Source of the DNA: Basidiobolus meristosporus CBS 931.73
Lineage: Eukaryota > Fungi > Basidiobolomycota
Length of the DNA stretch: 38,506 bases
Direction of reading: 5' to 3'
NCBI GenBank assembly: GCA_002104905.1
Contig: MCFE01000763.1
Location: forward strand, 1 to 38,506
Shown here: positions 1,733 through 38,506 of the stretch, piece after piece
Layout of the letters: each line of letters starts with the position of its first letter
Position numbering within the stretch: position 1 is the stretch's first letter
Translations under genes and position numbers: made by a program
The notes under the pieces: generated by a model
Told to the model about the DNA's origin: nothing
The model's input: the letters and a program-made list of their open reading frames with translations, nothing else
The model's database searches: none

Positions 1733-2059
1733 GTGAAGTGAATAACGTATTTGTGGGCTGGTATATAGGCTTGGCTGGACAAATTGCTATTTCATATCTC
1801 ACCTTTCGTTGACATATCAGGTCATTACTCACACTATCGCTTTATATCACCTTCTCGATCCCACTCTTGATTTAGCCTGGGTGTTGCTATTTCTTAAAAA
1901 TGATCCTTATGCCTAGCTGGTGATTCTCGTAAGTGAGACAGTGCATACACGAAATAGTAATCAGCATTTAATGTCAACCAGATGCTTTATAGTATAAAGC
2001 TAGAAGTAGATACTGAAGAAAGGGAAAGGCGACGTTGGCGATAGTGATGCTTAGATGTT

Positions 2060-2634
2060 CTTGCCGCAACAGTCCGAGTCCTTGGTACGTGTCTGATATT
2101 CGGAGCCACTACAACATGACTTAAGCGTTAGTAAGAGTGACCGAATGATACTTATATGCTGCCCTTGTATATTGTTGATGTAACAACGCTTTGTGCTGCA
2201 TATCCAATACTATACGAGATAATCCCTACTCAACCATGCCACTAAATTCCTTGAAAGTTACTGTTTCCGCACTTGCTCCTCTCCCTTTTTGCTGGGTAAC
2301 CCCACAGACTAGGCTTAAGTTCTCCCGGCTTTTTCTGTCTTCTAAAAGCGATCCAGGGCGACAAAAATACGTCAATCCCATCAGTTGCATCATGAACACG
2401 CTTTGCCACGCTTCCACTCTGTGTACCTAGGATTTAAGAAAGCTCCTGGATCATCCTCACGCATTCTGCGAACCTTACTTCCTGTCCAGAATGAAGATGG
2501 AAATTCTTCACTACACGCCTTTACGTTTTTAATAGCTCTACATACTCGGGGGCTGCCGTAGTATTGGGTCGGTTGCGTTCAAGAGGAGCGGCAGAAGAGG
2601 ATGCAAGTATCAAAGCACTGGCTAAGAGGATATC
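2060..2634 (-). pseudogene. Cys-rich secreted family C, copy C1 (pseudogene)
   Basis: Homologous to 28951-29445 and 14858-15531. Start codon deleted, CGCxxGYCW segment deleted, last exon partly deleted. Retains a TACTAAC branch point in the second intron. Confidence 0.8.
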
Positions 2635-2997
2635 TTGAGTAGACACTCCTCTACAGCCTTTATATTCGTTATTATATCTTCTTGGTTTGTAAGTCACACA
2701 ACATGCAACTTTAATATTAATCACGCTTGGGAAGAACCCAGAAATGGTTTAAACAGTCTAGTTCATCCGGTATAAAGTAGTACTTTTCTTGGATTGGATT
2801 CATTACTAAGCCATATCTCTTACATTTGTGCATCGATAACAACAGTGTCTTGAACGACCATTACTCACTACTCAGTATCATCTAGACAATTACGACAAAA
2901 CAATAGGAAAAGATACTTTATGATGCTTGCTTCGAGCGAAGGTAGTACTTCAAGAATATTTGCTTTCAAACTCTTTCGTAATGACCAAGTACAAGCT

Positions 2998-12413: not shown

Positions 12414-13520
12414 ATTTTTATGCAAAGTTGTGTGCCCGCTTAAACATTCAGTTATGAATTTGATTTTAATGATCAGAAAACTGTAATCGTAATCAAACAA
12501 GTATGTCATTTTGCAAACAAAATTTTAAGTATTTTTCTTTTCTTTGCTTGCTGATTTTCAATATGAATATGTAGCGAGAGAGATTGGTATTTTGTTTTGA
12601 TTTTTGAATGATAATTGGGTAACAACAAGCTGTCAGAATGTGCAGACCGTCCTCGCCAGGCTGTTGGAATAATCAACCGGCAAGTTCATCAACTGAACAG
12701 GTCCTAAGGTCCCGAAAGACCGATCGGCCACTGTTCACACTTCCCTTTACGGACAGCGCACTACATGTCATCTACCAGCTTGGTATTAGTGTCTTTGGTT
12801 GGGAAACAAAGACTGGGAATGTACTATATACATAATCCTGTAAAGTACAGTCGTAACGATACCAAACGACAGATGCTCCCTATTTATAGGAGAAAAATCG
12901 AGAAACAATTTTCTACTCATTTCGTGGACAAATCCCATAATATTGAAATCGACGAAAATAACTAGTATTATATAATCTGTTCTGAAATGCAAACATTGAC
13001 TATGAAATTACCAACTACGTAAGAACAGTGCCATTCCTGAGTGCACGCCTCAAGCCCTTGCTTGAGAAATCGTAGGTATGAGTCGTTTTGCGTCTCACGA
13101 ATAATACAATCGTATGTTGACTTGAACCATAAATCACATTTCCGGCATTTTGACCCCAAATATCGGCTCAATTATTTACAGTTCGTATAGAATGAGTAGA
13201 CAAACGTTGAAAATGGCGTTCAAACAGTTCTCCAAAAGCGGTAGTTGATGCACAACGCTGATTGAGTTTCTCTATCCGGCTATATTGCATGCACTATTTC
13301 ACCCTTGCCACCAACCAAATGTAAAGCGTCCCCGTTTCTCCGGTGTGTGTCGTTGTGAGGTATTGTAAAATGTCGATTCTTCTTGGACTAGTACACTGTG
13401 TCTACCGTGGATTGATAGTCTATGATACTGTGAGAATAGGGTAGTTGTGCAAAGAGGGCTTATTTGTTTTGCCTACTCAATATTCTCAGTTTAGATTGAT
13501 TTATCTGTTAGGCGCAATTG

Positions 13521-13982
13521 TCAGCACAATGAGTGTATTGAATATTTTGTTCTTTCACGCATTGTCTCTATTACTGGGGTTGTGTACTGTACATCTTGGG
13601 TGGGCTGCATCAGAACGTAGGGAGAGAAAGAACTGTGGTCCTTTTGCTTGGCATATTCTAATGCGTTGCCCCGACCCTCCAGCTCAAGAATGGGCCCTGA
13701 CTTGACACTGAAGCCTTTCTTTCGACTGGCATTAGCAATGTTCAGGCTATCATGCTTTCGGGTCACGGTAGTGAAAACCTGACGCAATAACGGGGATTGG
13801 ACATTGGGCGTCTTAAAGACAGATAAAACTCGAACGTTTTGGTAGTAATCGGTCGCATACTGTACACATGGTAAACTGCGATAATGAACCCTTCTATACT
13901 CGCGAGTGCATGGAGAAGAACAGCCGATTGGGGCAGCAACGGCAACTTGATTCGCGGCAAGGCCTACAGTAATAAAGCGCAT
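13521..13982 (-). pseudogene. Secreted family A, copy A3 (open 153-aa frame but degenerate)
   Basis: Hydrophobic signal core shortened (MRFITVGLAANQ), the second Cys of PCx6CYQ changed to Tyr, and the C-terminus frameshifted relative to A2. Confidence 0.65.
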
Positions 13983-14146
13983 GTGGAGCGAATAACGTAT
14001 TTGTGGGCTGTTGTATAGCATACAACATGGGTTAGCTGGGAAAATTGCTATTATATATTTCATGGATTAATCAGGTCATTACTCACACAATTATTATACT
14101 TTTCGAGTACCATCGGTATTTTGCATTCCCTTCACTGGTTATTTTT

Positions 14147-14657
14147 TCAATTTTCTTCCATTATTTTGTGGAACTCACGATGATTTTCTGGAGTATCTTT
14201 GAAGTGGCGACGAGCAGAGCTAAAATACTTCTTGTACCCACCTCTACTGCTGGCTGAGTGATGATAATTTGTAGAGGGTTTGATCAATGACTTGCGCCTG
14301 ATCGAACTGATTTGAGTTGGACAAGGCATTGGCTTTACTGGCAGAATGGCCATTGATGTTGTCCAGTAAGGCATGGGATGGTTGTAAATTTGAAATGTCA
14401 AACCCTTGCAACCCGAAGTCTGGCTCGTTTGCATTGGCCCACTCATCTCCGAATCATCCACCTCCTCAGTTGACGGCTGGTGTTCTTGACTGGGGGGCTA
14501 AGTGTCCTGAAAATAAGCACCCAGTTGTTCGACGCATGGCTCATTGGTTGAGGCTACCTGGGAGCCACCAAGTGGGGTAGCGGAGATTGCTTGCAGTGAA
14601 GCGATGGCGGAAACTAGCAACAGGAAGGAAGGCTGCATGACTGATTGGTGAAGTCAT
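14147..14657 (-). pseudogene. Secreted family B, copy B2 (pseudogene)
   Basis: 2-nt deletion after Met1, CYQ changed to YFQ, in-frame TAG at QDT*, several internal deletions. Confidence 0.85.
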
Positions 14658-14857
14658 GCGGACTCTCTCGATCCCACACAATTAGCTTTATGCGAGCTAG
14701 ATTGATTTAACCTGAGTGCCTCGCCGTTTGCTACTTCTCAAAAAATGTGAGACAGTGCATACACGAAATAGTAATCAGCATTTAATTTCAACCAAGTGCT
14801 TTATAGTATAAAGCTAGCAGTAGACAATGAGAATGTAGACATTGGGAAGAGTGATGC

Positions 14858-15531
14858 TTAAAAGAGGGCACAGTAGTTCTTGGCGCAATTAGTGTTGTCA
14901 AAAACGCAGTCCGAGTCCTTGGTGCATGTCTGATATTCGGAGCCACTGCAAAAAGACTTTAGCGTCAGTAAGAATGCAAACTTACTAAATGATACCTATA
15001 TGCTACCTTTGGATATTGTTGATGTAACACCACTCTGGTGCACTTTGCTACATATCCAATGCCAAACGAGATAATCGCTACTACTCCATGGCACTGAATA
15101 CCTTGTAAGTTACTGTTTCTGTACAGAAAACTCCATGGCAACTTACCCTTCTCCAGCAGTAGCCTTTGTTACAGCCGCAGATATCCTTGCCGCCTTTTTG
15201 CTTAGTAATCCCACAGACGAGGTTTGAGCTTTTTGCTGTCTGCTCAAAGCGATCCAGGGCATCAAAAAATACGTCAAGAGCACGCTTTGCCACACTATTG
15301 CTCGGTGCTCCCAGGCTTTGAGTAAACTCCTGGATCATCTTCACACATTCCGCGAACCTTACTTCCTTACCAGCGGGAATGGCCTTGAGTGAGGATGGAA
15401 ATTCTTCACTACATGCCTTTACGTTTTTATATAGCTCCACATACTCGGGGGTTGCCGTAATACTGGGCTGGTCACGGTCGAGAGGAGCGGCAAAAGAGGA
15501 TGCCGGCTAAGAGGATATTTCTGAAAAGCAT
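14858..15531 (-). pseudogene. Cys-rich secreted family C, copy C2 (three exons, two frameshifts)
   Basis: Introns 15094-15146 (GTAAGT..CAG) and 14946-15006 (GTAGCA..TACTGAC..CAG). Exon 3 encodes GSEYQTCTKDSDCVFDNTNCAKNYCALF*. Frameshifting deletions in the signal peptide (14 nt) and exon 2 (8 nt) relative to C3. Confidence 0.8.
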
Positions 15532-15670
15532 TTTGTCGTTAAGTGTTTCTTGAATGGTCACTCCTCTTTGGGCTTTATATTCGTATATGTGTATCTTCTT
15601 AGTTCCCACGACTATCAATCACTAAGTTTCAGGTCATACAACATGCAGGTACTGGCGACTGTATATTAAA

Positions 15671-15712
15671 TTGGTAATCCACCTTTGGTAATCCACCTTT
15701 GGTAATCCACCT
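15671..15712. repeat. 14-bp tandem repeat (TTGGTAATCCACCT) x3 upstream of C2
   Basis: Three direct units. Two units, one degenerate, at about 29597-29625 upstream of C3. Confidence 0.85.
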
Positions 15713-16459
15713 GGAGGTTTAGTCTTTCAAGCGAAATACGCATGATTTGTCATATTTTTGTATTTCAGGTACATGCAACTGAATGACTACAATATCGTCA
15801 AGAAAAGTCACCCAATTATGAGTAATCGGATTATTATTTGCATTGATCCAAGCTGAAGGCTCCCTTTTGTTACATACAGATTATATTTTTCCACTTGAGC
15901 AAGTGTTCATATTTTTCCAGATAGACTTCGATACATTTGATGTTGAACAACTAGCTGATATTGAGCTAAGATTCTTTTCGAACAACTAGCGGATATTGCT
16001 TTGCTTTTTTGAGGATGGTTCTTGTTTGCACCCATAATTGCAATAATCCTTTGATTGGTCGTAAAGCTGGTTCAGTCGTTGATATACAATCTTCTACGCA
16101 TCTACGCGGAGCTTTCCCGATTTATTAAACCTTCTCAATCCCATTCAATTAGGCTTCGTTCATAGCATTATGCAAGATAGATTGATTTAACCCGGTTGGC
16201 TTAGAGTACTGGTGTGAATAAATTTATTTGTTGTTTGTCAAGAGTCGACAATATACAGGGATTAGTTGAGGCTACCTTGGACTTTCTTGTTGCAATATAC
16301 GCACTTTTGATTAGTTATATGTGTTCGGCATTGACTGTGCCAATACACTCGAAAACCTGGATTCCCACAATTGATTTATCAGTGTAGCTTGCCTGAATGA
16401 AGGTTTGATATGCGAGCCCATTGGTACCCATGTTCCATCACTAAGCAGGAAGGCGCCAC

Positions 16460-16710
16460 ACTTCAAGTCATTGAATAAATGACTGCCATGCATAGCTTCT
16501 CCCCATAAAATAAGTTTATACGGCAAATGTAGCATATCCTCCTGATGCAGAGGTATCAGCCTCATCCAAGATAGCTAGATTTAAGTCCTTCACTCTGTGG
16601 TTGAGACCTTCATTCTTGCTTTGGTTGGCGGCATTGAAAGTCAGGGTAATGAAGTCAATCTTGGCCAATTTCTTGATGTAAAGGCCCGCAGTATGTTCCT
16701 TCACTCCTTG
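16460..16710 (-). pseudogene. Alpha/beta hydrolase relic 1
   Basis: ORF-track peptide KEHTAGLYIKKLAKIDFITLTFNAANQ...SASGGYAT aligns to [27 protein letters not shown]...CASGGYAT of 31502-32425. Confidence 0.85.
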
Positions 16711-16949
16711 TTCAGGAATGCATTTTAGACTGTCTTAGGGAGGCAAGGGCACTGCATTGGTACCGCTTCACTGGGGTCACTTGAGTTGAGTGAGCACTTA
16801 GAGGTCAACATTTGGCATTTACCATTACCATGATGAGGCAATGAACCTATTAAAAGATTTTTTGACTCTGTTAATCAGTTCTAACTATATATGAATAATT
16901 AAGTTTTGACAGTGATAATGCTTATGATTCAGGTACACAGCATTTTCTT

Positions 16950-18330
16950 CACCATCATCTCTCTGCCTCAACCAGAAATTTGCTAGACCAGAAGCTTGGG
17001 AGCTTATATAGTCAAGATTGGACTGAACCAAAAGGCAGTAGAAGAGAATAGGATATGGTAATATCAAAAACCAAATGGAGGGCTGGGTGTACTATATAGG
17101 TGGTTCTTGATTAGATCACTGAAGCTGGGGTTTTACTCCTGACAAAGTATATTGGGCTCAGAGCTCCATACATATTATATTGTGTCTTCTAATGTATGCT
17201 CAAGACAATAAACCAGATACGCAAGCACACAAAACTATTGTTTACAGCAAATACATTATGTGGTAAATTTTGTAATTACACGTAATCATCCATCCAACAT
17301 GATTGCCTAGATTATAGACTACAGGTCAGGCTCTGACAAAGTTCCTTATTGGGGTTTACCTGGAATGGCTCCTCCCAAAAGTACAGGCACTTAGGAAATG
17401 AAATATCTTAAAGCAGCTAATACAGCCTCAAACTTTGCACACATACTCTAGGGACATTCCTAAGCATATTCTATGTGCTTGTCTTACAAAGAGTATACAA
17501 AGAGTACAAATACTACTTTTACTTGAACAAGTCATTAAGTGAATACCCAATAATACACTTACTCTCTCAGTAAATGCAAATATCACCAAGACTCCTACAA
17601 CAAACTGATAGCTTGTATCAAAACTGCTCACATAAAGTTTAGCTGCCTTTTTCTACTACATGAGCCATTCCTTCAACACTTTCAGAGGATATTACCAATA
17701 CCTAGCAGCCTTTTATCATTACTCATAAAGGCTAGCCCATCTATATTATGGTGAATCCAATGTATCCTTGAGAATCTTGATGGTGCACAAGGTGTGCATA
17801 CACATGCAACCTGGTGAATTAGGCATATTGTATTCAGAGTTGGGCTCCTTCAGGATGCTGAGCACTCCTTGATTGTATATAACATTGCAATGAATGAGAT
17901 GCTTTAGTTCCAGTGCATGTTGGAAATGCTCTTCAATATGGTATTATTTATGATAGACATAAATAACTTTTAGTCAGCATACACACATATTCTGATCAAA
18001 CTATAAATAGTCATCAATATATACCAACAGCAGTACAACTGTATTGCTTAGTCATGGATCAATAGTTTCAATTTAAGATGCAAGTATTCAGTGAAGAGGA
18101 AAGCTACTATGCCACTTTAGCTACACAATAACACTTTGGTAAATAGAACCAATATTTGAAGCAAAACATATACACCAGTATGAACTTGGGAATTACAAGC
18201 TGACTCCTTGATGTGGCCTAGAGGTGCTATATATGGGTGCATAGGCCAGATGAGAACTGCTGGAAATCCTGCCTTCCAAGCTCTCTTTATATGCATGTAG
18301 TGGTAGATTTGAATGTGCATTCACAATGTT
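16950..18330 (-). mobile_element. Heavily decayed Ty3/gypsy-type LTR retrotransposon pol relic
   Basis: In the expected order on the minus strand: YHYMHIKRAWKAGF (cf. YHxxRIxxGDEWKTAF), VYIDD at 18010-18024, EEHFQH, DKRLLGI..LKEW (RNase H-like), then a weak integrase-like relic. Many stops, strong CpG depletion, no LTRs identified. Confidence 0.6.
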
Positions 18331-18489
18331 GATATCTTAGCTGTGCTTGCTGCCTTCATTCTTGTGTGTGATTGGTATGGAACTCAGTTGTTTACTGACT
18401 TATGAAAGGAGCAAAAGCTGGCTAATAACACACAGTAACATGAAGCCATATTGAAGTGCATTGTTCTATGTAATACTCAACAATGGTTC

Positions 18490-18885
18490 TTAATGACTTC
18501 GAAGCACATGAGGCTGGCATGTTAGAATATAACCACCAAGCAAATCTCTTACATTCATGATGGGTAGATAGAGGGTCTAATTGATGACCTATGCTTTGTC
18601 AAACTACTTAGGGTTCAGTAATGCATTGGCCTCACTGGAAAAGCAGCCTTTAAAAATGCCGATTCTTTGCAACTTTACTTTTTAGAATTCAATCTCTCAA
18701 ATCTAAGTCGCCTTCATTGTCAGTCAATGATAGGTCTTTGTTGTTGGAAGCCAGTGCCTCCTGATAACAAGCTCCCAACTGCTCAGCACATAGGTTGTTG
18801 ATGTGAGATACCTGAGATTGACAAAGATGTGATTACCGCAACAAGCAAGAGGAAGGAAAGCTGCGTGACTGGAATGGCGGAATCC
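18490..18885 (-). pseudogene. Diverged family B relic
   Basis: PVTQLSFLLLVAVITSL and, after a frameshift, EQLGACYQE match the B signal peptide and EQQGACYQD. Nucleotide similarity continues to about 18490. Confidence 0.75.
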
Positions 18886-19096
18886 CTCAGAAAGTTGCCG
18901 TACTTCCATTACTTTCTCTACGCCACTCAAGTTACCATTTATTTATTTGTGACATTAACTTCATGCTAGTCGAGCAACAGATATCATATATCGCATAAAA
19001 TTAGTTTCAGTCATCCATTGGTCAATTGTACGTAGCCATGTAACAGAGCCTGCTTAAATAATGCGGAGGAAAAGGCCTTGATGTCTAAAACTATGA

Positions 19097-19435
19097 GGTG
19101 GCGGCGCTGGCAATGGAAATAGCGGTAGCAGTGGTGATAATAGGAATGGTAGTTGTGGTAGTGGTGCTTTTGATACTGGTAACAGTAGCGGCGGTAGTGA
19201 TGGTGGGAGCGGAGGGGTTAGCAATGGTGGCAATAACGGAAATGGGGCTGGAAGCTGTGATTTTGAAGGTATTGGCAATGGCGGTGTTAATGAGAGCGGA
19301 GACGGCAGGGATGATTGTGTTATATTAAGAGCCAGGGCCATGTGGGATCATGCAAACTCGCTCTCCAAAACAGTGGGACTTGCCATGAAAGCAACAGATG
19401 GCTTCCGTTATGCTCAATGTTTGCACACTGCCTAA
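19097..19435 (+). pseudogene. Start-less Gly/Ser/Asn-rich reading frame
   Basis: Frame GGGAGNGNSGSSGDNRNGSCGSG...GRDDCVILRARAMWDH... is open for 112 codons but is directly preceded by TGA (19094-19096). The listed Val-rich and Pro-rich ORFs here are its shadow frames. Confidence 0.45.
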
Positions 19436-20229
19436 ACTTTGGATGTGTGATAAGCACCATTGGCTACATCGCTATCCTCAATGGCCTTTTGGCTGAAGGG
19501 GCTTGTCCAGACACCACCTCCCTAGAGAACCATGCGGGATTACAAACAGGAAAGCCATCACATGGATTCTTCATCTCTGTGGTGTTGTTCTCTTGCACAA
19601 TTGGCGTGGAAGCAAGTGCGCGGATGTGGTCAAGAGTAATCCCAATGGCCTTATCTATAGTGGAAGTAGCAAGCAAGAAAAATATATTTCTACATGCTTC
19701 AGCCAGTAGACAGGCCAGGCAAGATAAAATGATCAACAGTGACACTCTCCAAGTAGTGAAATTCAGAGAACTATAGTTGGCAAACTCAAAAGTCTGACAA
19801 ACAGGCTCCTTAAGATAAACGCACGCTGCAAGTGTGAGAGTATGTTGTGCTTTACACCACAACTGGTCATATCCATGGACTCCAAACACTGCTAACTAAT
19901 CAATCATAATGATAGCATTGATGATGTCTTGTGGCTCCTTTGCTAGAGTCATCTCTATAAAATCCTTTAGAAAGCCTGGGAAAAGTCTTTAACTTTCACA
20001 GTTTCTCAGCTCTCCGAAAACACATGACATTTCCGCTAGTCCTCTCTGCATTGTAGAAAATGCAAAAGTACAACGCGGCAACAAGAAGCCAGAGGATTTT
20101 TTTTGGTACTCCATAGCATCCAATAGTTTTACCATCACCAGATGCATGAAGTACCAATGTAGACAGTATTGAGAGTTAATTAAGGAATTTATTGAATGCC
20201 TATCTACTTCTATACACAGATATTGCCCT

Positions 20230-20958
20230 TTAGAGGCTCGAGAACACCTTGATGGCATCCTCAGCGGTGGATCGTGCGCTTGCTGGGTTAGCTCCAGTGA
20301 CAACTCGGCCGTCAGTTTGTGTAAAATCGGCAAACGGAGTGGGGGGTGCCACATACTCGGCTCCAACAGCGGCCGCTCCTTCTTCGATTGTAGCCACATT
20401 GGCTGATTTGATAATATCAAGCAGGCTAAGCATCACCTCACCCTCCGTGGTGAACCCGGTGACCTTCTTGCCAGCAATGATGGATTTGCCTGTGGTGCTG
20501 TCAACGATGCCTGGGAGAATGGCTGGTCCATGACACACAGCTGAAACAACACCTCCACGCTTGTATATGTCCTCGGCAATATGCTGTAGGCCACGAGCCG
20601 TAGGGTAATCCCACAAGGTCGCGTGCCCGGCAGAGGCAAAGAATAGGCCATAGTCAGCAGGGTTGAGGTCCGACGCCTTGCGAAGATGTGAGTTCAGTTT
20701 GACATTGAATGGATGTGAAGGGTCGTTCAGCACCTTTTGATCATCCTCGGAGAGAAAGTCTTTCGACAAGGAGTGCTCATCGACTCCGTAGGTACCAGTC
20801 TCGGAGGCGAAGTCAACCTCGAACCCGGCCTCAACAAGCGCTTCGTAAGGATGCAATGCTTCCGTATAGAAAAGTCCAGTCTTACTACCATTGGCGTAGA
20901 AGGGCTCGTTATAGCTGGTGATGGCTAGTAGTGCTCTGCGTGGAAGGTTGGCTGGCAT
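20230..20958 (-). CDS. HSP31: DJ-1/PfpI family glutathione-independent glyoxalase / Hsp31-like chaperone, copy 1
   Basis: Motifs TGLFYTEALHPY, FFASAGHATLWDYP, AVCHGPA (nucleophile Cys-His), VTGFTTEGE and VVTGANPASA match yeast Hsp31. TATA about 45 nt upstream. Intronless, 242 aa. Confidence 0.95.
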   Translation of the reverse strand: MPANLPRRALLAITSYNEPFYANGSKTGLFYTEALHPYEALVEAGFEVDFASETGTYGVDEHSLSKDFLSEDDQKVLNDPSHPFNVKLNSHLRKASDLNPADYGLFFASAGHATLWDYPTARGLQHIAEDIYKRGGVVSAVCHGPAILPGIVDSTTGKSIIAGKKVTGFTTEGEVMLSLLDIIKSANVATIEEGAAAVGAEYVAPPTPFADFTQTDGRVVTGANPASARSTAEDAIKVFSSL

Positions 20959-22674
20959 TGTAATTTAGTTCTGAATACCAAACCAGGTTCATCGAGTCAC
21001 GTTATATAATGGGCTCGTGAAACTGGATGACAAATTGATCGAAATTTCTGGCAAATGATCATTTTTTTTTGATGATGATCACTTATCAAGTAGTGAGATA
21101 CTGACCATTTTTGGTTAGAACTACGATGGCTTTCATGGTGTGTTATGTAATATACATCAAGCAGCGGGGGATAGACATGACCGCCTATGCTTTGATTATC
21201 TTTACGTTCTAGTTACGAATCTAATTTTGGGCTGAGTGTCTTCGGCGAGATGAAGGATTCAAATACGTTGCTTCCGTGGCTTTAGAAAGTCACTTATCGA
21301 GGTACAGTGCTTCGTTTACTGTCAGACTAGTTAGATTTCAGCTTACATGTACGTTACCTGTCGTCTGGCTATTTACGTAGCTAAATATTCATGAAGCCGT
21401 ATAGACTGCCACTTGGAAGAATCGAATCGTGATTGAGCACGCAAAATTTTATTGACACGTGACGCAATCACGGAGGTATTACAAAAGCTGGAACAGGTAA
21501 TGCTGAGGATGTCAGATCTGAGATAATACCACATTTCACTCAGTGCTTAGACCCACAGAGTCAATTCCCAACCGGGTAGGTTTCATGTAGCGATCCACTA
21601 GCTTGGATCAGCTTGTGGGTCTTTCCTCCAATAAGATACAACCTCTTGGGCTTTTGGCAAACTCGATTCCATACGTAATTCAAGATGTGATAGAAACATC
21701 TTCGTCGACTTCAACAACGCAGTGATTCTCACGTAAAGAAGGAAATCCCTTCGAACATTCCAAAATTCTGCCAAGTCTGCCAACCAATCTTGTATAAGCG
21801 GTACTTTATCCCGATTGCATACGAAATCCGAACCCAGTGCTTATGCCGGGGATGAGCAACTGCAGGAGGAGTTGTAGAAGTTTTCGGAAAAGTTGGTGAA
21901 AGCGAAGGTTTCTGTATAAAAGATGTAAACAAGCCAATTAATCATTAAAATATTGATGGAGTAACTACCATAGATGTGTAATAGCGTAATTCCTCAGAGT
22001 TATGAGCCACTAATTGACTTCTGACATCCTTGGTACCTGAACAAAGCAGGCCTGTCTATCAATCTGTTGATGATATTATTCTTATCTTCCACAGGGAACA
22101 CATTCCATACAACTTGCATGCATGCATACATAACTCTTGTCTTGGCTAAGGTTGCAAACATGGGAAAATAGCGGAATATGAAATGCATGTTTCAATGTTA
22201 CAGCGCTTGATATTTTATAGGTCGAAATTACCACTATCCCCGGAGTATATATCACTCAATTATTACCACTGTACTTGACCAAGTAGGCAGCATTGTCAAG
22301 GAGTATCAAACTGTAGATCTTTGTGTGTGTTTTCATTTTTGTGATTAGGGTTGTTGCTCCATAACAAAACCGCCATGATCTCAACTTGGACTATGCAAAG
22401 AAACACACACATATTACCCTGTCTCACTGGAAGATAAAGTAAGCAAAGATTTCAATTTCCTTTTTCCATCAAACTTAAACTTCATACCAGCCTAATCTCG
22501 GGACCAAGTAGGCAGATTAGGACGTAAATGTTGTAGTTGAGGCTAGAAAGGTTGAAAGCCATATACTACTGATGTAGTTTCTTAACTAATGTACATAGTG
22601 AAGGGTCATTCTACGATAGCAGGTAGGAAAGGTTAGATAATTCATAAGAGCCAAGTACTGGATTGAGTGGCACT

Positions 22675-22810
22675 AATACCTAATGCATCAATCCTCTGGA
22701 AGTTGACCTCGTCTAAGGTGGTGAGGTAGGATACGGCACTTTTGAGGTTCTTCAAGATATCTTGGGAGGCCTTCACTCTAACCCTGATAGGCGGCATCAA
22801 AAGTATGAGA
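22675..22810 (-). pseudogene. Alpha/beta hydrolase relic 2
   Basis: gacctcgtctaaggtggtgaggtaggatacggcacttttga...ttcaagatatcttgggaggccttcactct matches about 32120-32240. Confidence 0.8.
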
Positions 22811-23674
22811 TAATATCATTTTGTTCGGTAAGAAGTATGAACATTGACACTCAATCCCCATCACTAGATATGACTGTACTCGCTCTAGTTACTATCCTCA
22901 AGTTTTGGTTAAATGCATACCGTTCCACATACTCTGCATTGGTTGGACTTCAAAACATTCACCATAATGATTTCCCGTACTGTAAGAACTGCCAGTGAAA
23001 AGCCTTACATGGCCAACTGAATCCGAAAGATACACCTCGTAGTCTCCCTTGGAAGGCAATCTTCACAACCTTCTTCAGCATGCTGACACAGTAGCACAAA
23101 AGCCAAACCAGTATTTTACCCGATATCCAGTGGATTGCTAGGTAGGATGCAATTGTGAACAACAAACATATTGTCAGCCGCAATCCCGTATACAAACCGT
23201 GCCGATAAAAATCATTCTTAGCATTATGTTGATGCCGAGTATTCTTCAACATGCAACTAGTCATGCCGTGGCTTTTTAGCTTCTGCTTCAAATTAAGTAA
23301 CGAGAAAACGAATAAAGATTGTCATTCCTGAGTCTGAGCATATCGAGGGTTTGTTTATTGTCAATAAATAAGTGGGGAATGATAATATTTGAAAAGTCCA
23401 TTGATATGAGGCACAGATACGTGAATAGTTAGGTCTGCTAGATATATCTATCAAACTATTCAGTTTTGAAATTGTTACTGAACAGGAGTAGCAATCTGTG
23501 GAGCTTTCATGGTTAGGGCAAACAAAGCTATGGCCCCCAATGGTAGTACTTAAGGTTAGTTCACCTACCAATACAATGACTATGTACGTTGTATTTGCTT
23601 ATTTTATTTGCATAGAAGGTTGTTGCTCTCTTTACAATGAACAAGGATTACATATTATACACATGGACAGCCTC

Positions 23675-24403
23675 TCAAAGACTTGAGAACACTTTGATAG
23701 CATTCACCGCAGTAGATTTGGCACTTGCAGGGTTAGCGCCAGTGACCACACGACCATCAGTCTGAGTAAAGTCGGCAAAAGGAGTAGGGGGTGCCACATA
23801 CTCTGCCCCGACCGCCGCTGCTCCTTCCTCGATTGTAGCCACATTGGCCGATTTGATCAGCTCAAGCAGATTTAGCATTTCCTCACCCTCAGTGGTGAAC
23901 CCAGTAACCTTTTTGCCAGCAATGATGGACTTACCAGTGGTACTATCCATGATACCTGGGAGAATGGCGGGTCCATGACATACAGCCGAAACCACACCCC
24001 CGCGCTTATAAATGTCTTCAGCAATATGCTGCAGGTGACGAGCTGTAGGATAATCCCACAGGGTTGCGTGGCCAGCAGAGGCAAAGAACAGCCCGTAGTC
24101 AGCAGGGTTGAGATCTTCCGCCTTGTAAAGCTGCGAGTTCAGTTTGACATTGAATGGATGTGAAGGGTCGGCCAGCACCTTTTGATCATCTTCGGACAGG
24201 AAATCCTTAGAGAGGGAGTGCTCATCCACTCCGTAGGTACCAGTCTCGGACGCAAAGTCGACCTCAAACCCGGCCTCAACAAGCGCTTCGTAAGGATGCA
24301 ATGCTTCGGTGTAAAACAGTCCGGTTTTACTGCCGTTGGCGTAGAAGGGCTCGTTATAGCTGGTGATGGCTAGTAGTGCTCTGCGTGGAAGGTTGGCTGG
24401 CAT
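23675..24403 (-). CDS. HSP31: DJ-1/PfpI family Hsp31-like glyoxalase, copy 2
   Basis: Same motifs as copy 1, intact 242 aa. Confidence 0.95.
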   Translation of the reverse strand: MPANLPRRALLAITSYNEPFYANGSKTGLFYTEALHPYEALVEAGFEVDFASETGTYGVDEHSLSKDFLSEDDQKVLADPSHPFNVKLNSQLYKAEDLNPADYGLFFASAGHATLWDYPTARHLQHIAEDIYKRGGVVSAVCHGPAILPGIMDSTTGKSIIAGKKVTGFTTEGEEMLNLLELIKSANVATIEEGAAAVGAEYVAPPTPFADFTQTDGRVVTGANPASAKSTAVNAIKVFSSL

Positions 24404-25301
24404 TGTAATTTAGTTCTGAATACCAAACCAGGTTCATCGAGTCACGTTATATAATGGGCTCGTGAAACTGGATGACAAATTGATCGAAATTTCTGGCAAA
24501 TGATCATTTTTTTTGATGATGATCACTTATCAAGTAGTTGAGATACTGACCATTTTTGGTTAGAACTACGATGGCTTTCATGGTGTGTTATGTAATGCAC
24601 ATCAAGCAGCGGAGTTAGACATGACCGCCTATGCTTTGATTATCTTTACGTTCTAGTTACGAATCTACTTTTGGGCTGAGTGGCTTCGGGGAGATGAAGG
24701 ATTCAAATACGTTGCTTCCGTGGCTTTAGAAAGTCACTTATCGAGGTACAGTGCTTCGTTTACTGTCAGACTAGTTAGATTTCAGCTTACATGCTAAATG
24801 TACGTTACCTGTCGTCTAGCTATTTACGTAGCTAAATATTCGTGAAGCCGTATAGACTGCCACTTGGAAGAATCGAATCGTGATTGAGCACGCAAAATTT
24901 TATTGACACGTGACGCAATCACGGAGGTAATGTGAGATAATACTGATTCGTCCGGCGCTTGCATTGTTTGTAAGTATAGATGAACTGATTCCATATCGAC
25001 ATTGACTGCCAATGTCATTAACCGGCGTGACACTGCAAGTCACTATACCTGCTAGTAGTTCACGCTTGGACGATTATCGCATAATTTTGGTTAAATAGCA
25101 CTCACTCCACTTACGCTGAGTATTCAACCATGGTATTATTAACTACGTTAGTCTTGAAAGTTACATTGTGTGTGGTGTACAGGGTATTGGGTCATGGATG
25201 TTGGTTATCGTTAAGATAACTGTCGTTTGCTATTGCTTCAGTGCATGTGGGATTTCATTTGCTGTTTATTGATTATCTATATGTTGGTGCTAGTCTTTAC
25301 T

Positions 25302-25990
25302 TCAGCACTGGCTCCTCTCAAGATGGGTGTTGGGAGGGTTAATCACACTACATAGTGGTGAAACATATCCATCTGCTGGCTTGGGAGACAAAGCCAAGGT
25401 ACTGAGGATTCCGTTGCTTAGCATATTGGTAGTTGCTGGGACAATCAATCCATCTGAGCTAGGATTTGATAGGCTTCGGTAGACACACACACGCTCTCCA
25501 CGGCAGTTAGCCTCACTGAAGAAGCAGAAAGTATTCTCAGCGAAAGGACTGAAATTCATGACTCCCACATTGGGCTTGGGCGATATGTTGTAGCATTGGT
25601 TGATCTTTGGATAATACAACTGATAGGTAGATCCATAGGCGCCATCCTCTCCGTTACAATAGCCCATGACTCCGTTGGGAATGGAGTTAGGGGACACAGA
25701 GGTCTCGCTATCATCAACCTGGTAGTTAGTTTCGTTCATTGGATACTCCCAGTCAAGTCTGCTTCGGAGGAAAGCACGGCCGAATACCAAGTGGGATAGT
25801 TCATACTATTGATCAGGCATTGATGTGTTACACTTGTGAATGGCAGGTTAGGCGGAAACTCCTCCACAATAGGGGAGTATGTCAAGGGAGGAAGTAGTCC
25901 GTTTGTGCCAATCTTAGGGTCCAGAGGCTTGCTTGTTACAGAGGCGGCAAGTACACCCAGAATAGCGAGGTCAGTTATACGGAAAAGCAT
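25302..25990 (-). CDS. Secreted Cys-containing protein of unknown family, split by a frameshift or an intron
   Basis: TATAAAA at 26022-26028. Signal peptide MLFRITDLAILGVLAASVTS-KP (25736-25990) overlaps a second frame (25302-25790) with protein-like QCYNI...FCFFSEANCRG. A 113-nt GTAACA..CTAAC..CAG intron would join them in frame. Confidence 0.55.
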
Positions 25991-26085
25991 TGTTATGGCA
26001 GCATACCATGCTACGTTTCTCTTTTATATTGGTTCCCCAAACCTCAGTTACTAGTAGGAAAATTTTTGGAAGAATTGTCTATCTC

Positions 26086-26162
26086 AAAGTATTCCAAAGA
26101 GAAGGTTTAGTGCTGGTAATTGCCTATCAGAAAGTGTTCCAAAGAGAAGGCTTAGTACTGGT
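26086..26162. repeat. 45-bp-period direct duplication upstream of the 25990 gene
   Basis: aaagtattccaaagagaaggtttagtgctggt at 26086 and aaagtgttccaaagagaaggcttagtactggt at 26131. Confidence 0.85.
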
Positions 26163-26710
26163 GGAAGCTTGTCTGATAGCGGAATCTGATTGCGCTCGAA
26201 GTCTTGAGTTCGATTTTCCTGGGTTTTTTCTTTGAGTCGAGCAAGTTTATCCGAGGGAACATAGCGGCTGGAGTAATATGGTAATTACCAACTAGTAGCA
26301 GCAATAACTTTCCAGTGTTTTGGCTTCCAGATCCATACACCAATTACAAAACTTCTCTGGTTAATGCGATTTCGCCCCCGCAACATTCGCCAAGATGGAA
26401 AGTGCCGGAATTAAGTTACGAGTAGTTCCTGCTTATAGTAATGTCTTGTGTAGCTAAATCAATTTACCTCAATATGGAGATATCCTACACTTAGCACACA
26501 CCGGTTTGGCTATTTATGGTTGGATGGTGTCAATACGAAAAATAAGGCAACAGGGATGAAGGAATGGGGGTAGTAAAAAACTCTGAAAGAGATTTACTGA
26601 TTTATATGGTCAGTTATTGCAACTAAGCTGCTACCTTCATTGAGATGAAAGGATGTGGATATTGGTGTCACTATATTAGTTGACGAGGTTAGTAGGAATA
26701 TAGTAAATAG

Positions 26711-26742
<32 letters not shown>
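26711..26742. repeat. (TA)n microsatellite
   Basis: Run of TA dinucleotides just left of the third segmental copy. Confidence 0.95.
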
Positions 26743-27645
26743 ATAGAATTCATCTAATAATTATCTATCACTGAAAAATGCCATCTTGCAAACAAAATCT
26801 TAAGCATTTTTCTTTTCATTGCTTGCTGATTTATAATGTGAATTTGTAGCAATATAGATTGATATTTTGATTGGTATTTTGATTTGATTTTTCAATGATA
26901 GTTGGGTAACAACAAGCTGTCAGAATGTGCAAACCGTCCTTTAGCGTACTGGGAATGTACTATATACATAATCCTGTAAAGTACAGTCGTAACGATACCG
27001 AGCTGCAGATGCTTCCTATTTATAGGGGAAAAAATCGAAAAAATTTTCCCTTATTTCGTGGCCAAATCCCACAATATTAGAAGAGACAAAAAAATCTGTA
27101 TTATATATACTGCTCCGTACTGGAAACATTGACTATGAAATAACCAACTACGTAAGAACAGTGCCATTCCTGTGTGCACGCATCAAGCCCTTGCTTGAGA
27201 AGTCGTAGTATGAGTCGTTTTGCGTCTCACGAATACTACAATCGTATTTCGGCTTAGACCAAAAATCATGTTTACGGCAATTTAACTCCCAATATCGATA
27301 CACTTATTTTACAGTTCGATGCAGCAACTACACAAACATTTAAAATGGCGTTTACAAAGGCTCACTGACATCCCAAAGTAGGGACCTACCGATTCTCCAA
27401 TACGGTAGTTGATACATAACGCTGATTGAACTGTTGCATGCACTATTTCACCCTTGCTACCAACCAAATGTGAAGTGTCCCTGTTCCTTCGATGTCTGTC
27501 GTTGTAGGTTATCAATTCTTTTTGGACTGGTGCACTGTGTCTACCATGGATTGATAGTCTGTGAGACTGTGAGAGTAGGGTAGTCGCGCAAGGAGGGTTT
27601 ATTTGTTTTGCCTACTCAATATTCTCTGTTTAGGTTGATTTATCT

Positions 27646-27935
27646 GTATTTTGTCACGAGGCCTTTAGTGCCGTTGGCATTAGTAATGTTCAGGTTATCG
27701 TGCTTTCTGATCACGGTGGTGAAAGCCTGGCGCAATAACGGGGATTGGACATTGGGCGTCTTAACGACAGGTAAAGCTCGAGTGTTTTGGTAGTAATCGG
27801 CTGCATACTGTGCACATGGTGAGATGCGATAATGAGCCCTTCTATACTCGCGAGTGCGTGGAAAAGAACAGGGGCAGCAACGGCTACATGATTTGTGGCA
27901 AGGCCTGGAATCACTGCTACGGTAACAAAGCGCAT
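27646..27935 (-). pseudogene. Secreted family A, copy A4 (pseudogene)
   Basis: Frameshift after MRFVTVAVIPGLATNHVAVAAP, and a large deletion of the C-terminal coding region. Confidence 0.85.
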
Positions 27936-28158
27936 GTGGAGAAACAGTTGAATAATGAATTTGTGTACTGGGTAAATTCCTATTATGTATAGCATAGCTC
28001 ACCTTTCCTTGACTAATCAGGTCATTACTCATACCCTCAGTATTTTACAAACGTTTCCATAGTTTCTTATTTTTTCAATTTCCTTCCATTATTTTGTGGA
28101 GCTCATCATGACTAAACCTGATATGTGTAGTTACATGGCTTTTGTCTTTATTCTATTG

Positions 28159-28710
28159 CTAATCTGAGTATTTGTTTCCACTGAAATATCTAACTTTGAA
28201 GTGGCGACGAGCAGATCTCTTATACTTCTTGTACCCACCTCTAAGCGCACGCGCTGCTGGCTGAGTGATGATAATTTGTGGCTGTTGCTGCTTGGGCTGG
28301 TACAAGGTTTGATCAATGACTTGCGCTTGGTCGAATTGGTTTGAGTTGGACAAGGCATTGGCTTTACTGGAGGAATGGCCATTGATTTTGTCCAGCAAGG
28401 CTTGGGATGGTTGAAGATTGGAAATATCGAACCCTTGCAACCCAGAGAATCCTGGCTGCTCACCCGAAGTCTCGCTTGTCTGCATTGGAGCACTCATCTC
28501 TGAATCATCCCCCTCCTCAGTTGACGGCTGGTATTCTTGACTGGGGGCCGAGGTGTCCTGATAACAAGCACCCTGTTGTTCGACGCATGGCTCATTGGTG
28601 AAGGCTACCTGGGAGTCACCGAGTGGGGTAGCGGAGATTGCTTGCAACGAAGCGATGGCGGAAACTAGCAAGAGGAAGGAAAGCTGCATGACTGGCTGGT
28701 GGAGTCTCAT
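28159..28710 (-). CDS. Secreted family B, copy B3 (183 aa)
   Basis: Nearly identical to B1, differing by two substitutions and the last few residues. Confidence 0.8.
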   Translation of the reverse strand: MRLHQPVMQLSFLLLVSAIASLQAISATPLGDSQVAFTNEPCVEQQGACYQDTSAPSQEYQPSTEEGDDSEMSAPMQTSETSGEQPGFSGLQGFDISNLQPSQALLDKINGHSSSKANALSNSNQFDQAQVIDQTLYQPKQQQPQIIITQPAARALRGGYKKYKRSARRHFKVRYFSGNKYSD

Positions 28711-28777
28711 GCGAACTTCCCCGATTTATATCACCTTCTCGATCCCACTCTATTAGGCTTCGTTCATAGCACTAGCT

Positions 28778-29445
28778 TTATGCAACATAGATTGATTTAG
28801 CCTGGTTGCCTCGCCAGTTGCTACTTAAAACATGACCCCAAACCTTATGCCTAGCTAGTGATTCTCGTAAGTGAGACAGTGCATATACGAAACACCACTC
28901 TAGTGCACTTTGCGGGGGCGCTGCATATCCAATACCAAACGAGATAATCCCTACTCCACCATGGCACTGAATACCTTGTAAGTTACTGTTTCTGTACAGG
29001 AAATATCATGCCAACTTACTCTTCTCCAGCAGTAACCTTTGTTACAGCCGCAAATATCCTTACCACCTTTTTGCTTAGTCACCCCACAGACTAGATTTGA
29101 GTTCTCCCAGCTTTTTGCTGTCTTCTCGAAGCGATCCCGGGCATCGAAAAATACGTCAACCCCATTAGTTGCATCAAGAGCACGCTTTACCACGCTATTG
29201 CTAGGTGTTACCAGGCTTTGAGTAAACTCCTGGATCATCTTCACGCATTCCGCGAACCTTACTTCCTTACCAGCGGGAATTGTCTTCAGTGAAGATAAAA
29301 ATTCTTCGCTACACGCCTTTACGTTTTTAAATAGCTCCACATGCTCGGGGGTTGCCGTAATACTGGGCTGGTTGCGGTCAAGAGGAGCGGCAAAAGAGGA
29401 TGCAAGCATCAAAGTACTGACTAAGAGGATATTTCTGAAAAGCAT
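28778..29445 (-). CDS. Cys-rich secreted family C, copy C3 (exons 1-2 intact, exon 3 deleted; possibly non-functional)
   Basis: TATAAA at 29488-29493, signal peptide MLFRNILLVSTLMLASSFA-AP, dibasic KR site. Intron 28967-29019 (GTAAGT..CAG, 53 nt) restores GYCWRR-CHGG...EWC. A deletion of about 260 bp relative to C2 removes exon 3, so the frame runs into unrelated sequence to TAA at 28778. Confidence 0.65.
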
Positions 29446-30267
29446 TTTGTTATTAGATGTTTCTTGAATGGATACTCCTCTTTGGGCTTTATATTCGTTT
29501 ATGTGTAGTCCCGGCCAACCTTCTTAGTTCCCACGACTGCCAATCACTAAGTTTGTAAGTCATACAACATGCAGGTACTGGCGACGTTATATTAAATTGG
29601 AAATCCCCTTTGGTAATCCACCTGGATGTTTAGTCTGTCAAGACTGTGTGCTCGAAATACGCTTGATTTGTAATCTTTTTATATCTTGGGTTTATGCACC
29701 TGACTGTTGCCGATATCGTAGAGAAAAGTCATCCAATTATGAGCAACCATAACGCATTCTTGGATTATGTATATAGTATATGTTCAAACACTGCTTTGAT
29801 ATTGTGTAATTATTTGCATTAGTTCAAGCTGAAGGCTCACTTTTGTTAATCAATGAGCAATCGATCGTAAAGCTGGTTAAAGAGGTTCTGTCATTGATAT
29901 ATATAATGCCGTAGTACCTTTTTTAGCAATGAAGGCCTTGAACCACTTGAGGTCACTATGGGTCATTAGCATGTACACAAATATAGATAATTTATCCGAG
30001 TAATCATTATGTGCTGAGCATAGTTCCAAGAAACTATAAGGTCCTTTCTCTCTTCAAGCACCATGACTGGGTAGGGAGTAGCGATGAATGGGGGGGTAAG
30101 GGAAAGCTTCATGATTGATTTGGTGCAAAGTAAGATTAGGATGACCAACATAAATGAGTCAGATCACGTTCCAAAACTGAAAACAGTCTAGTTTATCCGG
30201 TACAAAGTAGCATTTTTCGCGAGTTGAATTCATCACTGAGCAATGTCTCCTAGATTTGTACACAGCA

Positions 30268-33870: not shown

Positions 33871-34599
33871 CTAAAGACTTGAGAACACTTTGATAGCATC
33901 CACGGCGGTGGATTTAGCACTTGCAGGGTTAGCTCCAGTAACTACCCGGCCATCAGTCTGGGTAAAGTCGGCAAATGGAGTAGGGGGTGCCACATACTCT
34001 GCTCCGACCGCCGCTGCCCCTTCCTCAATTGTGGCTACATTGGCCGATTTGATCAGCTCAAGTAAATTTAGCATTTCCTCACCCTCAGTGGTGAACCCAG
34101 TAACCTTTTTGCCAGCAATGATGGACTTACCAGTGGTACTGTCCATGATTCCTGGGAGAATGGCGGGTCCGTGACATACAGCTGAAACCACACCCCCGCG
34201 CTTATAAATGTCTTCAGCAATATGCTGCAGGTGACGAGCTGTAGGATAATCCCAAAGGGTTGCGTGGCCAGCAGAGGCAAAGAACAGTCCATAGTCAGCA
34301 GGGTTAAGATCTTCTGCCTTGTAAAGATGTGTGTTCAGCTTGACATTGAAAGGGTGTGAAGGGTTAGCCAGCACCTTTTGATCTTCTTCGGAGAGGAAAT
34401 CCTTGGACAGTGAGTGTTCATCCACTCCGTAGGTACCAGTCTCGGAGGCAAAATCGACCTCAAACCCGGCCTCAACAAGCGCTTCGTAAGGATGCAATGC
34501 TTCAGTGTAAAAGAGTCCAGTTTTACTGCCGTTAGCGTAAAATGGCTCGTTATAGCTGGTGATGGCAAGTAGTGCTCTGCGTGGAAGGTTGACTTGCAT
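33871..34599 (-). CDS. HSP31: DJ-1/PfpI family Hsp31-like glyoxalase, copy 3
   Basis: Same motifs, intact 242 aa. Confidence 0.95.
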   Translation of the reverse strand: MQVNLPRRALLAITSYNEPFYANGSKTGLFYTEALHPYEALVEAGFEVDFASETGTYGVDEHSLSKDFLSEEDQKVLANPSHPFNVKLNTHLYKAEDLNPADYGLFFASAGHATLWDYPTARHLQHIAEDIYKRGGVVSAVCHGPAILPGIMDSTTGKSIIAGKKVTGFTTEGEEMLNLLELIKSANVATIEEGAAAVGAEYVAPPTPFADFTQTDGRVVTGANPASAKSTAVDAIKVFSSL

Positions 34600-35717
34600 T
34601 GTAATTTAGTTCTGAATACCAAACCAGGTTCATTGAGTCACGTTATATAATGGGCTCGTGTAACTAGATGACAAATTGATCGAAATTTCTGGCAATGGAT
34701 CATATTTTTTTTGATCACTTATTGAGATACCAACCATTTTTGGTTAGAACTACGATGGCTTTTGTGGTGTATTATGTAATATGCATCAAACGGCGGGGAT
34801 AGACATAACCGTCTATGCTTTGATTGTCTGTACGCGCTAGTTGCGATTTGCTTTTTGGGTTGAGTATCTTCGGGGAAATAAAGGTTTCAGACTACCTTGC
34901 TTCCGTGTCATTGGAAAGCCACTTGACATACTTCTTTTACTGTCAGACTAGTCAGATTTCAGCTTATATGTACATTACTTGTCGTCTGGCTATTAACGTA
35001 GCTAAATATTTGTGAACCCGTGTAGTCTGCCACTTGGAAAAATTAACTTGATTTTCTCACCGGTTGCTACTTTCATAACTTCAATGCCTCGCTATTTATT
35101 AAACATTATCTCGTTAGTCTTTAGGTGGTAACTAGCAAGATGATAAGCCGATATTTCTCTCAGCCAGATTTGCCACCTTCTTGGGTTCATTTCACCATTG
35201 TTTTGGACACATTAGAAGCAGTTTTGGCTTCAATTCACCTACCAAAGCTATAGTGTGATAGTCTAACAACAGGTACTGGCAGCAGGGGGGAGGAGGTTAG
35301 GAATTCGAAAGACGCATTAGCTAAGCACCGGTGCTAAACAGGACCAGGAAACCGAGCTTGAGGTGATAATGGGTTATCAAGCAAAAATTCCAAAGCTAAT
35401 TAACATTTTGGGTATTTGGCTGCTGAGGTATTCATGGGCTTGCAACAATTGAAAGACTGAGAGTGAAGTTCCAAACTAATAGTGAATCGCAACCACCGCT
35501 GAATATACTTATTCTTCCCATGCATGCAATCATTTTCATAAGCCCTAAAAATCGCTGTGCAGTAAGAAGTAAATAAAGAACGTTTAACTGCAACCTTTTT
35601 CATAATCCCTTGCCATCCCAAATATAGTGGCACCTGGATCAATTTATAAATAGGTATATGGTCAGGTTCTGATAGAAGCGCTGCCACTTGTCGAGGGTCA
35701 ACGTTACTAATACTAGG

Positions 35718-38256: not shown

Positions 38257-38506
38257 AGGGTAGGGTTAGGGTTAGGGTTAGGGTTAGGGTTAGGGTTAGG
38301 GTTAGGGTTAGGGTTAGGGTTAGGGTTAGGTTAGGGTTAGGGTTAGGGTTAGGGTTAGGTTAGGGTTAGGGTTAGGGTTAGGGTTAGGGTTAGGGTTAGG
38401 GTTAGGGTTAGGGTTAGGTTAGGGTTAGGGTTAGGGTTAGGGTTAGGGTTAGGGTTAGGGTTAGGGTTAGGGTTAGGGTTAGGGTTAGGGTTAGGGTTAG
38501 GGTTAG
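38257..38506 (+). repeat. Telomere (TTAGGG)n
   Basis: Continuous TTAGGG array to the end of the window with the G-rich strand running toward the end. Three TTAGG variant units. Confidence 0.99.

Follow-up and report, generated by a model that had tools for sequence, protein, structure and literature searches.

The 38,506-bp scaffold MCFE01000763.1 of Basidiobolus meristosporus CBS 931.73, analysed here in its entirety and referred to below as the window, carries three broken copies (C1, C2 and C3) of a gene family that we call family C. We conclude, with a probability of about 0.8, that family C is a Basidiobolus gene family of secreted, ten-cysteine prepro-proteins resembling Tha p 2, a major allergen of the setae of Thaumetopoea pityocampa and T. 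processionea, and that the copies in the window are pseudogenes. The evidence comes from intact relatives elsewhere in the genome and in B. ranarum, from the profile match of their cysteine-rich (Cys) domain to a Tha p 2-like family, and from the lesions of the window copies.

In the account proposed here, family C would be an expanded family, so far found only in Basidiobolus, that encodes a secreted prepro-protein. In the mature part, a conserved helix would precede a small, beta-rich domain that carries the ten cysteines, and the lysine-arginine (KR) pair that precedes it would serve as a kexin/Kex2-type site. Two short introns split the Cys domain, in places that B. meristosporus shares with B. 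ranarum, and each of the three window copies travels with a copy of the same downstream partner gene.

Intact copies and the three-exon gene

A word-based protein search with exon 1 of C3 led to P0003 (K493DRAFT_297314), a protein of 205 amino acids (aa), and a second correct 205-aa model is P0043 (K493DRAFT_366880); both are annotated as hypothetical proteins. At least four intact copies are present elsewhere in the B. meristosporus genome, namely P0003 (locus L001), P0043, and loci L004 and L005, which show three open exons each when the exons are translated singly. The P0003 locus (L001:1083-1814) lies 1 kb from the end of a 201-kb contig and has introns of 53 and 61 nt in the same places as those of the window copies, the second with the branch sequence TACTAAC. 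In B. ranarum, the orthologue P0011 is correctly modelled at 205 aa and is 67% identical, with the twelve cysteines and the KR pair all conserved, and a second locus (L002), read exon by exon, shares the position and phase of both introns, which there measure 59 and 66 nt. The full-length proteins compared here (P0003, P0011 and P0043) are all natural database entries.

The same exon/intron structure appears in seven further loci of two species, a recurrence that, judged from sequence comparison, lies far beyond chance. Between L001 and L002 the introns are only 59-66% identical, with indels. The ratio of nonsynonymous to synonymous substitution rates (dN/dS) for the same pair is 0.18 in exon 1, 0.03 in exon 2 and 0.12 for the exons summed; exon 3 has a dN of 0.16, with synonymous sites saturated. 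These substitution patterns show the signature of purifying selection on the intact family C copies, and the three-exon gene, as reconstructed from such comparisons, is real.

An earlier reading of the window, made from its letters without database searches (the sequence-only reading), had proposed a three-exon gene for a protein with a signal peptide, a propeptide ending in a KR site, and ten cysteines. The exons and cysteines recur in the intact paralogues (P0003, P0043, L004 and L005) and in B. ranarum (P0011 and L002), and the signal peptide and propeptide with its KR site are likewise seen in the intact paralogues and the B. ranarum orthologues. The spliced consensus assembled in that reading differs from natural P0003 by one residue (V/I) over its full length. 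The same reading would have been undone by the lack of an intact orthologue anywhere; intact copies exist in two species. It had also held that the gene was hidden and could be recovered only by combining three copies, which is true within the window and not genome-wide; since correct 205-aa GenBank models stand elsewhere, the gene was hidden only within the window.

By inspection, the signal peptide of P0003 comprises residues 1-22 (SFA/AP), with a basic residue and a hydrophobic core of ~16 residues, and the region is found in both species. It is followed by an acidic propeptide of 69 aa that contains two cysteines and ends in ..AKR (KR at 90-91), and by a mature part of 114 aa (12.5 kDa, isoelectric point 5.2) that holds ten cysteines. 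Identity between B. meristosporus and B. ranarum is 43% in the signal peptide, 59% in the propeptide, 71% in the helix after the KR pair and 77% in the Cys domain, and this rise along the protein is the pattern expected of a processed precursor. The KR pair is invariant in every Basidiobolus sequence that reaches its position. We infer that the protein is secreted and cleaved after KR.

Several existing gene models depart from this structure. P0002 (L004:4001-4732) and P0004 (L005:1875-2606) skip exon 2 of apparently intact B. meristosporus genes. In the B. ranarum models P0005 (L002:2624-3369) and P0006 (L003:3001-3459), translation runs on into intron 1, at the cost of most or all of the Cys domain; at L003, no recognisable exon 2 was found in the 350 nt before the contig end. 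P0013 is a partial model that ends just past the KR site. The finding therefore corrects the genome annotation, in which two of the four intact B. meristosporus copies and at least two B. ranarum models are wrong.

The Cys domain and its relatives

Standard family resources did not place the domain. Scans of Pfam and NCBIfam came back empty, whether single exons, whole proteins or the Tha p 2-like proteins described below were used, and a sequence search of the PDB gave no match. Squash inhibitor and EB module were considered for exon 3 and rejected, as their 15.4 and 14.8 bits fell short of the cut-offs (22 and 24.3), and neither appeared with the whole protein.

The relationship emerged from an exhaustive phmmer search with P0003 alone against 1.84 billion representatives, which at E <= 1e-3 returned eight proteins. 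Seven are from Basidiobolus, by name or by genome match; the eighth (P0018, E 9e-4) is a 133-aa protein from an assembled public run (Logan run ERR10899946) that matches P0003 residues 125-191. Its gene is intronless (L008:6001-6402) and lies on a gene-dense eukaryotic contig, the called genes of which are each a single open reading frame (ORF). The neighbouring genes gave no named cluster mates, and the fibrillarin encoded there resembles those of human and yeast to about the same degree. Twelve relatives of P0018 were retrieved by a word search, including three paralogues named 'Allergen Tha p 2 [Folsomia candida]' and proteins of Adineta ricciae, and a metagenome scan added fourteen Tha p 2-like loci (L009-L022). 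These loci lie on eukaryotic contigs of low guanine-cytosine content from environmental samples, and in many the N-terminal region is long and helical, as in the rotifer type; in-frame stops are present in L014, L019 and L021.

Profile comparison by hhalign of Basidiobolus with this Tha p 2-like family gave a probability of 97.7% (E 2.4e-12), and pairwise BLASTP of P0003 with the Folsomia 'Allergen Tha p 2' P0025 gave E 5e-7. In a 25-sequence alignment (A7), the invariant columns are eight cysteines (C2-C7, C9 and C10, in the numbering of the family), two glycines and two tryptophans, and P0003 and P0011 keep all twelve. The window and seven Basidiobolus loci, translated in six frames to give 4684 fragments, were then searched with a hidden Markov model (HMM) of the family built without Basidiobolus. 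The top 24 matches of this model were all family C exon pieces, and the exons proved collinear on the model, with the end of exon 1 at positions 5-25, exon 2 at 25-37 and exon 3 at 36-63. This collinearity is, at the level of sequence, independent support for both the homology and the splice model; the L008 protein, moreover, runs unbroken across both family C junctions. On this profile evidence, the Cys domain belongs, as a divergent representative, to the Tha p 2-like family, which has neither a Pfam model nor a solved structure. The family as a whole would span the allergen of processionary-moth setae and proteins of a springtail, a bdelloid rotifer and soil or moss eukaryotes.

A possible internal echo was seen in P0003 between residues 133-142 (..C-G-C-N-K-G-Y-C..) and 195-202 (..C-A-K-N-Y-C..). 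It caused MAFFT to misplace an exon 3 fragment and gives a weak BLASTP sub-alignment; it may be chance.

A different or wider affiliation is suggested by predicted structures. The AlphaFold model of P0018, a canonical family member, has a predicted local distance difference test score (pLDDT) of 67, with a core at 76-82, and contains a three-stranded sheet; compared with PDB folds it gave 0 matches in Foldseek and a best VIA-align Z of 2.2. In the ESM Atlas, whole P0003 has as its top matches by feature score two IDI-2 clusters (0.90 and 0.89, with 172 and 165 shared features), and the top structural match of the Atlas's own P0003 model is an Idi-2 cluster, to which residues 131-205 align. The best Atlas match of the P0018 AlphaFold model is the same Idi-2 cluster, of 135 ascomycete proteins, with a template modelling (TM) score of 0.56 by query over 54 residues (root mean square deviation 2.5 A) that cover the whole Cys domain. 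Victoriocin reportedly has the same prepro layout as family C, KR site included. Podospora anserina IDI-2, which is induced in heterokaryon incompatibility, is described as small, secreted and homologous to victoriocin (PMC3689799), and victoriocin of Helminthosporium victoriae is a broad-spectrum antifungal protein (PMC3597494).

The Cys domain may, then, belong with ascomycete IDI-2/victoriocin, in which case family C would encode a kexin-processed antifungal preprotoxin. This reading is compatible with the Tha p 2 link, since it would join the three into one superfamily, but it remains a tentative lead that we hold somewhat short of an even chance. The phmmer search with P0003 found no ascomycete protein at E <= 1e-3, none of the relatives retrieved with P0018 is named IDI-2, and the ESM Atlas feature score vanishes when residues 108-205 are used alone. 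Both sides of the structural comparison are predicted models, and a TM of ~0.5 over ~55 residues of a small disulfide-rich domain is weak; the two models tested scored 0.48 and 0.56 by query against the Idi-2 cluster, over 54-59 residues, all being predictions of a short domain.

A broader proposal would place moth Tha p 2, its springtail, rotifer and soil-eukaryote homologues, the Basidiobolus proteins and IDI-2/victoriocin in one superfamily of secreted, disulfide-rich defence toxins, the patchy spread of which would reflect horizontal transfer among soil organisms. We consider this unlikely, although not negligibly so. If it were true, the superfamily would give the moth allergen a testable function, and the Basidiobolus proteins would be antimicrobial or anti-animal agents.

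The broken copies in the window and their setting

Self-comparison of the window revealed a ~3-kb cassette present three times (about 600-2700, 12800-15800 and 26800-29750), each holding one minus-strand family C copy: C1 at 2020-2646, C2 at 14858-15531 and C3 at 28778-29445. Probing the window by tblastn with intact family C proteins uncovered no further copy. The parts of the three copies are as follows.

29020..29445, minus strand: C3 exon 1, with ATG at 29445 and 142 intact codons ending ..GYCWRR
28967..29019, minus strand: C3 intron 1, 53 nt, GTAAGT (starting at 29019)..CAG, phase 0
28889..28966, minus strand: C3 exon 2 remnant, in frame from 28966 (CHGGVGIISFGIGY..EWC; starts CHGG)
28778..28888, minus strand: C3 out-of-family tail, to the TAA stop in the Joint Genome Institute (JGI) model P0001 (204 aa)
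15147..15531, minus strand: C2 exon 1, broken by three deletions
15094..15146, minus strand: C2 intron 1, 53 nt, GTAAGT..CAG
15007..15093, minus strand: C2 exon 2, frameshifted at ~15049 by the loss of 8 nt, a deletion also found in L007
14946..15006, minus strand: C2 intron 2, 61 nt, GTAGCA..TACTGAC..CAG, phase 2
14858..14945, minus strand: C2 exon 3, intact, 28 codons and a stop, four cysteines
2020..2646, minus strand: C1, the most decayed copy, without ATG, 83.5% identical to intact L001

C3 keeps exon 1 intact. This exon, identical to residues 1-142 of P0001 and 85.5% identical to intact P0003, encodes the signal peptide, the propeptide ending in KR and, of the mature part, the helix and five cysteines (the first five); the TATA-like region upstream of it is conserved with that of the intact copy. 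Intron 1 has counterparts at the same position in intact L001 and in B. ranarum L002, and the profile of the Tha p 2-like family, of which L008 is an intronless member, is continuous across the junction; the 164-aa ORF called mechanically at 28951-29445 is a read-through of this intron. Homology to the other family C copies stops at ~28889, so that nothing is left of intron 2, exon 3 or the last part of exon 2. The tail that replaces them matches the region downstream of the 3' untranslated region in C1, and four of the eight family-invariant cysteines are absent.

C2 is 96.1% identical to the intact paralogue L001. A 23-nt deletion in the signal peptide (about 15505) causes a frameshift and then a stop; the other two deletions of exon 1, of 18 nt at about 15278 and of 9 nt at about 15229, leave the frame unchanged. 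Downstream, intron 2 has the position and phase seen in L001, L004, L005 and B. ranarum L002, and exon 3 is 100% identical to P0003 residues 177-205 and matches positions 36-63 of the Tha p 2-like HMM. In C1, a 39-nt loss takes out the CGC..CW block, and at least ten further indels are present, including deletions of 14, 16 and 18 nt and several of 1 nt; the intron 2 branch site is TACTAAC. The sequence-only reading had described no copy in the window as complete, with C1 lacking its start and the CGC..CW block, C2 bearing two frameshifts and C3 lacking exon 3. Set against intact L001, each of these descriptions matched, and every coordinate it had given, all on the minus strand, was right.

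The lesions also record a history. The 23-, 18- and 9-nt deletions of C2 are common to the paralogues L006 and L007; the 8-nt deletion is common to C2 and L007, and a 17-nt loss at the start of intron 2 to L006 and L007. These shared deletions indicate that inactivation of the lineage preceded its spread to at least three places. Another eroded paralogue lies 5 kb from an intact gene (L001:6493-7105). On other B. meristosporus scaffolds, three chimeric models contain family C debris, fused with the partner gene in P0010 and P0012 and with a kinase-like protein in P0014, so that the genome must harbour additional dead copies at scattered sites. We propose that C1, C2 and C3 are subtelomeric pseudogenes: the C2 lineage would have been inactivated and then duplicated, C3 would have lost its 3' third, and C1 would be heavily eroded. 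The locus would thus illustrate how subtelomeric duplication multiplies genes that are already dead.

Two JGI proteins are encoded on the scaffold, and it could be argued from them that the window copies function as annotated, with P0001 (C3, 204 aa) and P0007 (C2, 106 aa) as real, shorter products. Both are open gene models, and C3 retains an intact exon 1, a signal peptide and the conserved upstream region. P0001, however, is without half of the eight family-invariant cysteines, and its last 37 residues are unrelated sequence, while P0007 begins at an internal methionine, has no signal peptide and depends on a splice acceptor that is not conserved and leaves out the first part of exon 2. The frameshift and stop in the C2 signal peptide, also found in L006 and L007, is moreover an old lesion. 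We regard functional shorter products as improbable.

More improbable still is the suggestion, prompted by the UniRef/UniProt name of P0001 (window 28778-29445), 'Pectinesterase inhibitor domain-containing protein', and by a propeptide that holds two cysteines and had looked helical to the sequence-only reading, that the N-terminal half is a pectinesterase-inhibitor-like helical domain and the protein an enzyme inhibitor, since Pfam scans of exon 1, P0001, P0003 and P0011, taken as far as E <= 10, matched no family (PMEI PF04043 included), the name is absent from the close paralogues P0003, P0043 and P0002, and a conserved KR between the N-terminal region and the best-conserved part is a better fit to a propeptide.

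Four points weigh against the conclusion that family C encodes secreted Tha p 2-like proteins and that its window copies are pseudogenes. The family takes its name from the depositors' label on a Folsomia protein and not from a T. pityocampa sequence, the springtail "Allergen Tha p 2" being the only named member. The sequence-only reading had likened the cysteine pattern to Tha p 2, and the phmmer result, the hhalign probability of 97.7% and the Folsomia-named relatives uphold that comparison subject to the same label. The AlphaFold model of the Basidiobolus mature part is unusable (pLDDT 47.8) and was kept out of all fold searches. C3 retains the open 204-aa model P0001 and might, although improbably, make a truncated product. 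Finally, a defence role is a guess, and the label of effector or toxin given in the sequence-only reading is a putative one.

Around the family C copies, the remaining features of the window are these.

27640..28710, minus strand: partner gene copy directly downstream of C3 (tblastn)
about 13521-14653 and 3498-4867, minus strand: other copies of the partner gene (tblastn)
38266-38506, plus strand: telomere repeat (TTAGGG)n at the right scaffold end

The telomere repeat at its right end makes the window subtelomeric, that is, a chromosome end. The partner gene has a signal peptide, a region rich in Q, S, P and E, and KR/RR sites, and gave no Pfam match. In every locus examined, 200-260 bp separate it from the family C gene upstream, which has the same orientation, and the two are duplicated together. 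This single gene accounts for both families B and A of the sequence-only reading, each being a part of it, as both fall inside single called genes beside intact family C (L001:2028-3318, 348 aa; L004:4975-6159; L005:2866-4077). Immediately upstream of the partner copy at 4325-4867, family C is absent. The window also holds three copies (20230-20958, 23675-24403 and about 33872-35043) of a DJ-1/PfpI-family gene (Pfam E 3e-8) that are 84-90% identical in DNA; the copies at 20230-20958 and 23675-24403 are open 242-aa ORFs.

Possible function and comparison with known systems

Our guess, for which we would give odds a little below even, is that family C has a role as an extracellular defence or competition protein. 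It is prompted by secretion, the prepro form, the compact disulfide-rich domain, the expansion of subtelomeric copies beside other secreted cysteine-rich families, and the IDI-2/victoriocin lead. A defence protein of this kind would act by binding a target on the surface of another organism.

The link between a fungal gene family and a clinically relevant allergen matters in its own right. Tha p 2 is known only as an immunoglobulin E-binding component of the urticating setae (PMC13532929). Papers on it (PMC7345192, PMC11335235, PMC13532929) discuss it only within processionary moths and without a known function and, judged from titles and abstracts, none of ten papers mentioning Tha p 2 seems to deal with fungi. 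An expressible fungal member and the possible connection to an antifungal toxin would together offer an experimental handle on the function of the domain.

Tha p 2 is a protein of 13 kDa and 115 aa (PMC7345192) with ten cysteines, a predicted long helix followed by a three-stranded antiparallel sheet, and, in its model, a bond between cysteines C1 and C8 (PMC11335235). The Basidiobolus mature part is likewise small, at 12.5 kDa, and has ten cysteines, and the helix followed by a three-stranded sheet also appears in the predicted models obtained here. Tha p 2-like and Basidiobolus proteins have in common the motif GC-x-x-G-x-CW-x-x-C, then WCY, then C-x-x-D-x-D-C. Basidiobolus differs by the 69-aa propeptide ending in KR and by two introns within the domain, the intronless L008 being the sole called gene of the Tha p 2-like family seen; in addition, the loop that follows its fourth cysteine is longer by an insertion of 13 residues.

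The cysteines themselves differ in one pair. Basidiobolus is without family cysteine C8 and has an extra cysteine (LVC) twelve residues upstream of the first family cysteine; since C8 is absent, the C1-C8 bond predicted for Tha p 2 cannot form. This pair is also missing or altered in P0026, L011, L016, L017 and L022, and so does not define the family; P0026, L016 and L017 are without both C1 and C8, which fits their pairing. Using the alignment and the published Tha p 2 model (PMC11335235), we infer five disulfides in Basidiobolus, of which four would be conserved family pairs and the fifth a lineage-specific N-terminal pair (LVC-DIC) that replaces C1-C8.

Among fungal systems, IDI-2 and victoriocin are, like the Basidiobolus proteins, small, secreted and rich in cysteine. 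The IDI-2 clusters consist of ascomycete proteins of 147-148 aa; the searches with P0003 and P0018 detected no sequence similarity to them, and homology is therefore tentative. The kexin-processed killer preprotoxins have the same order of parts as family C, with a signal peptide, a propeptide, a dibasic site and a disulfide-rich mature protein, a resemblance that is one of architectural analogy only.

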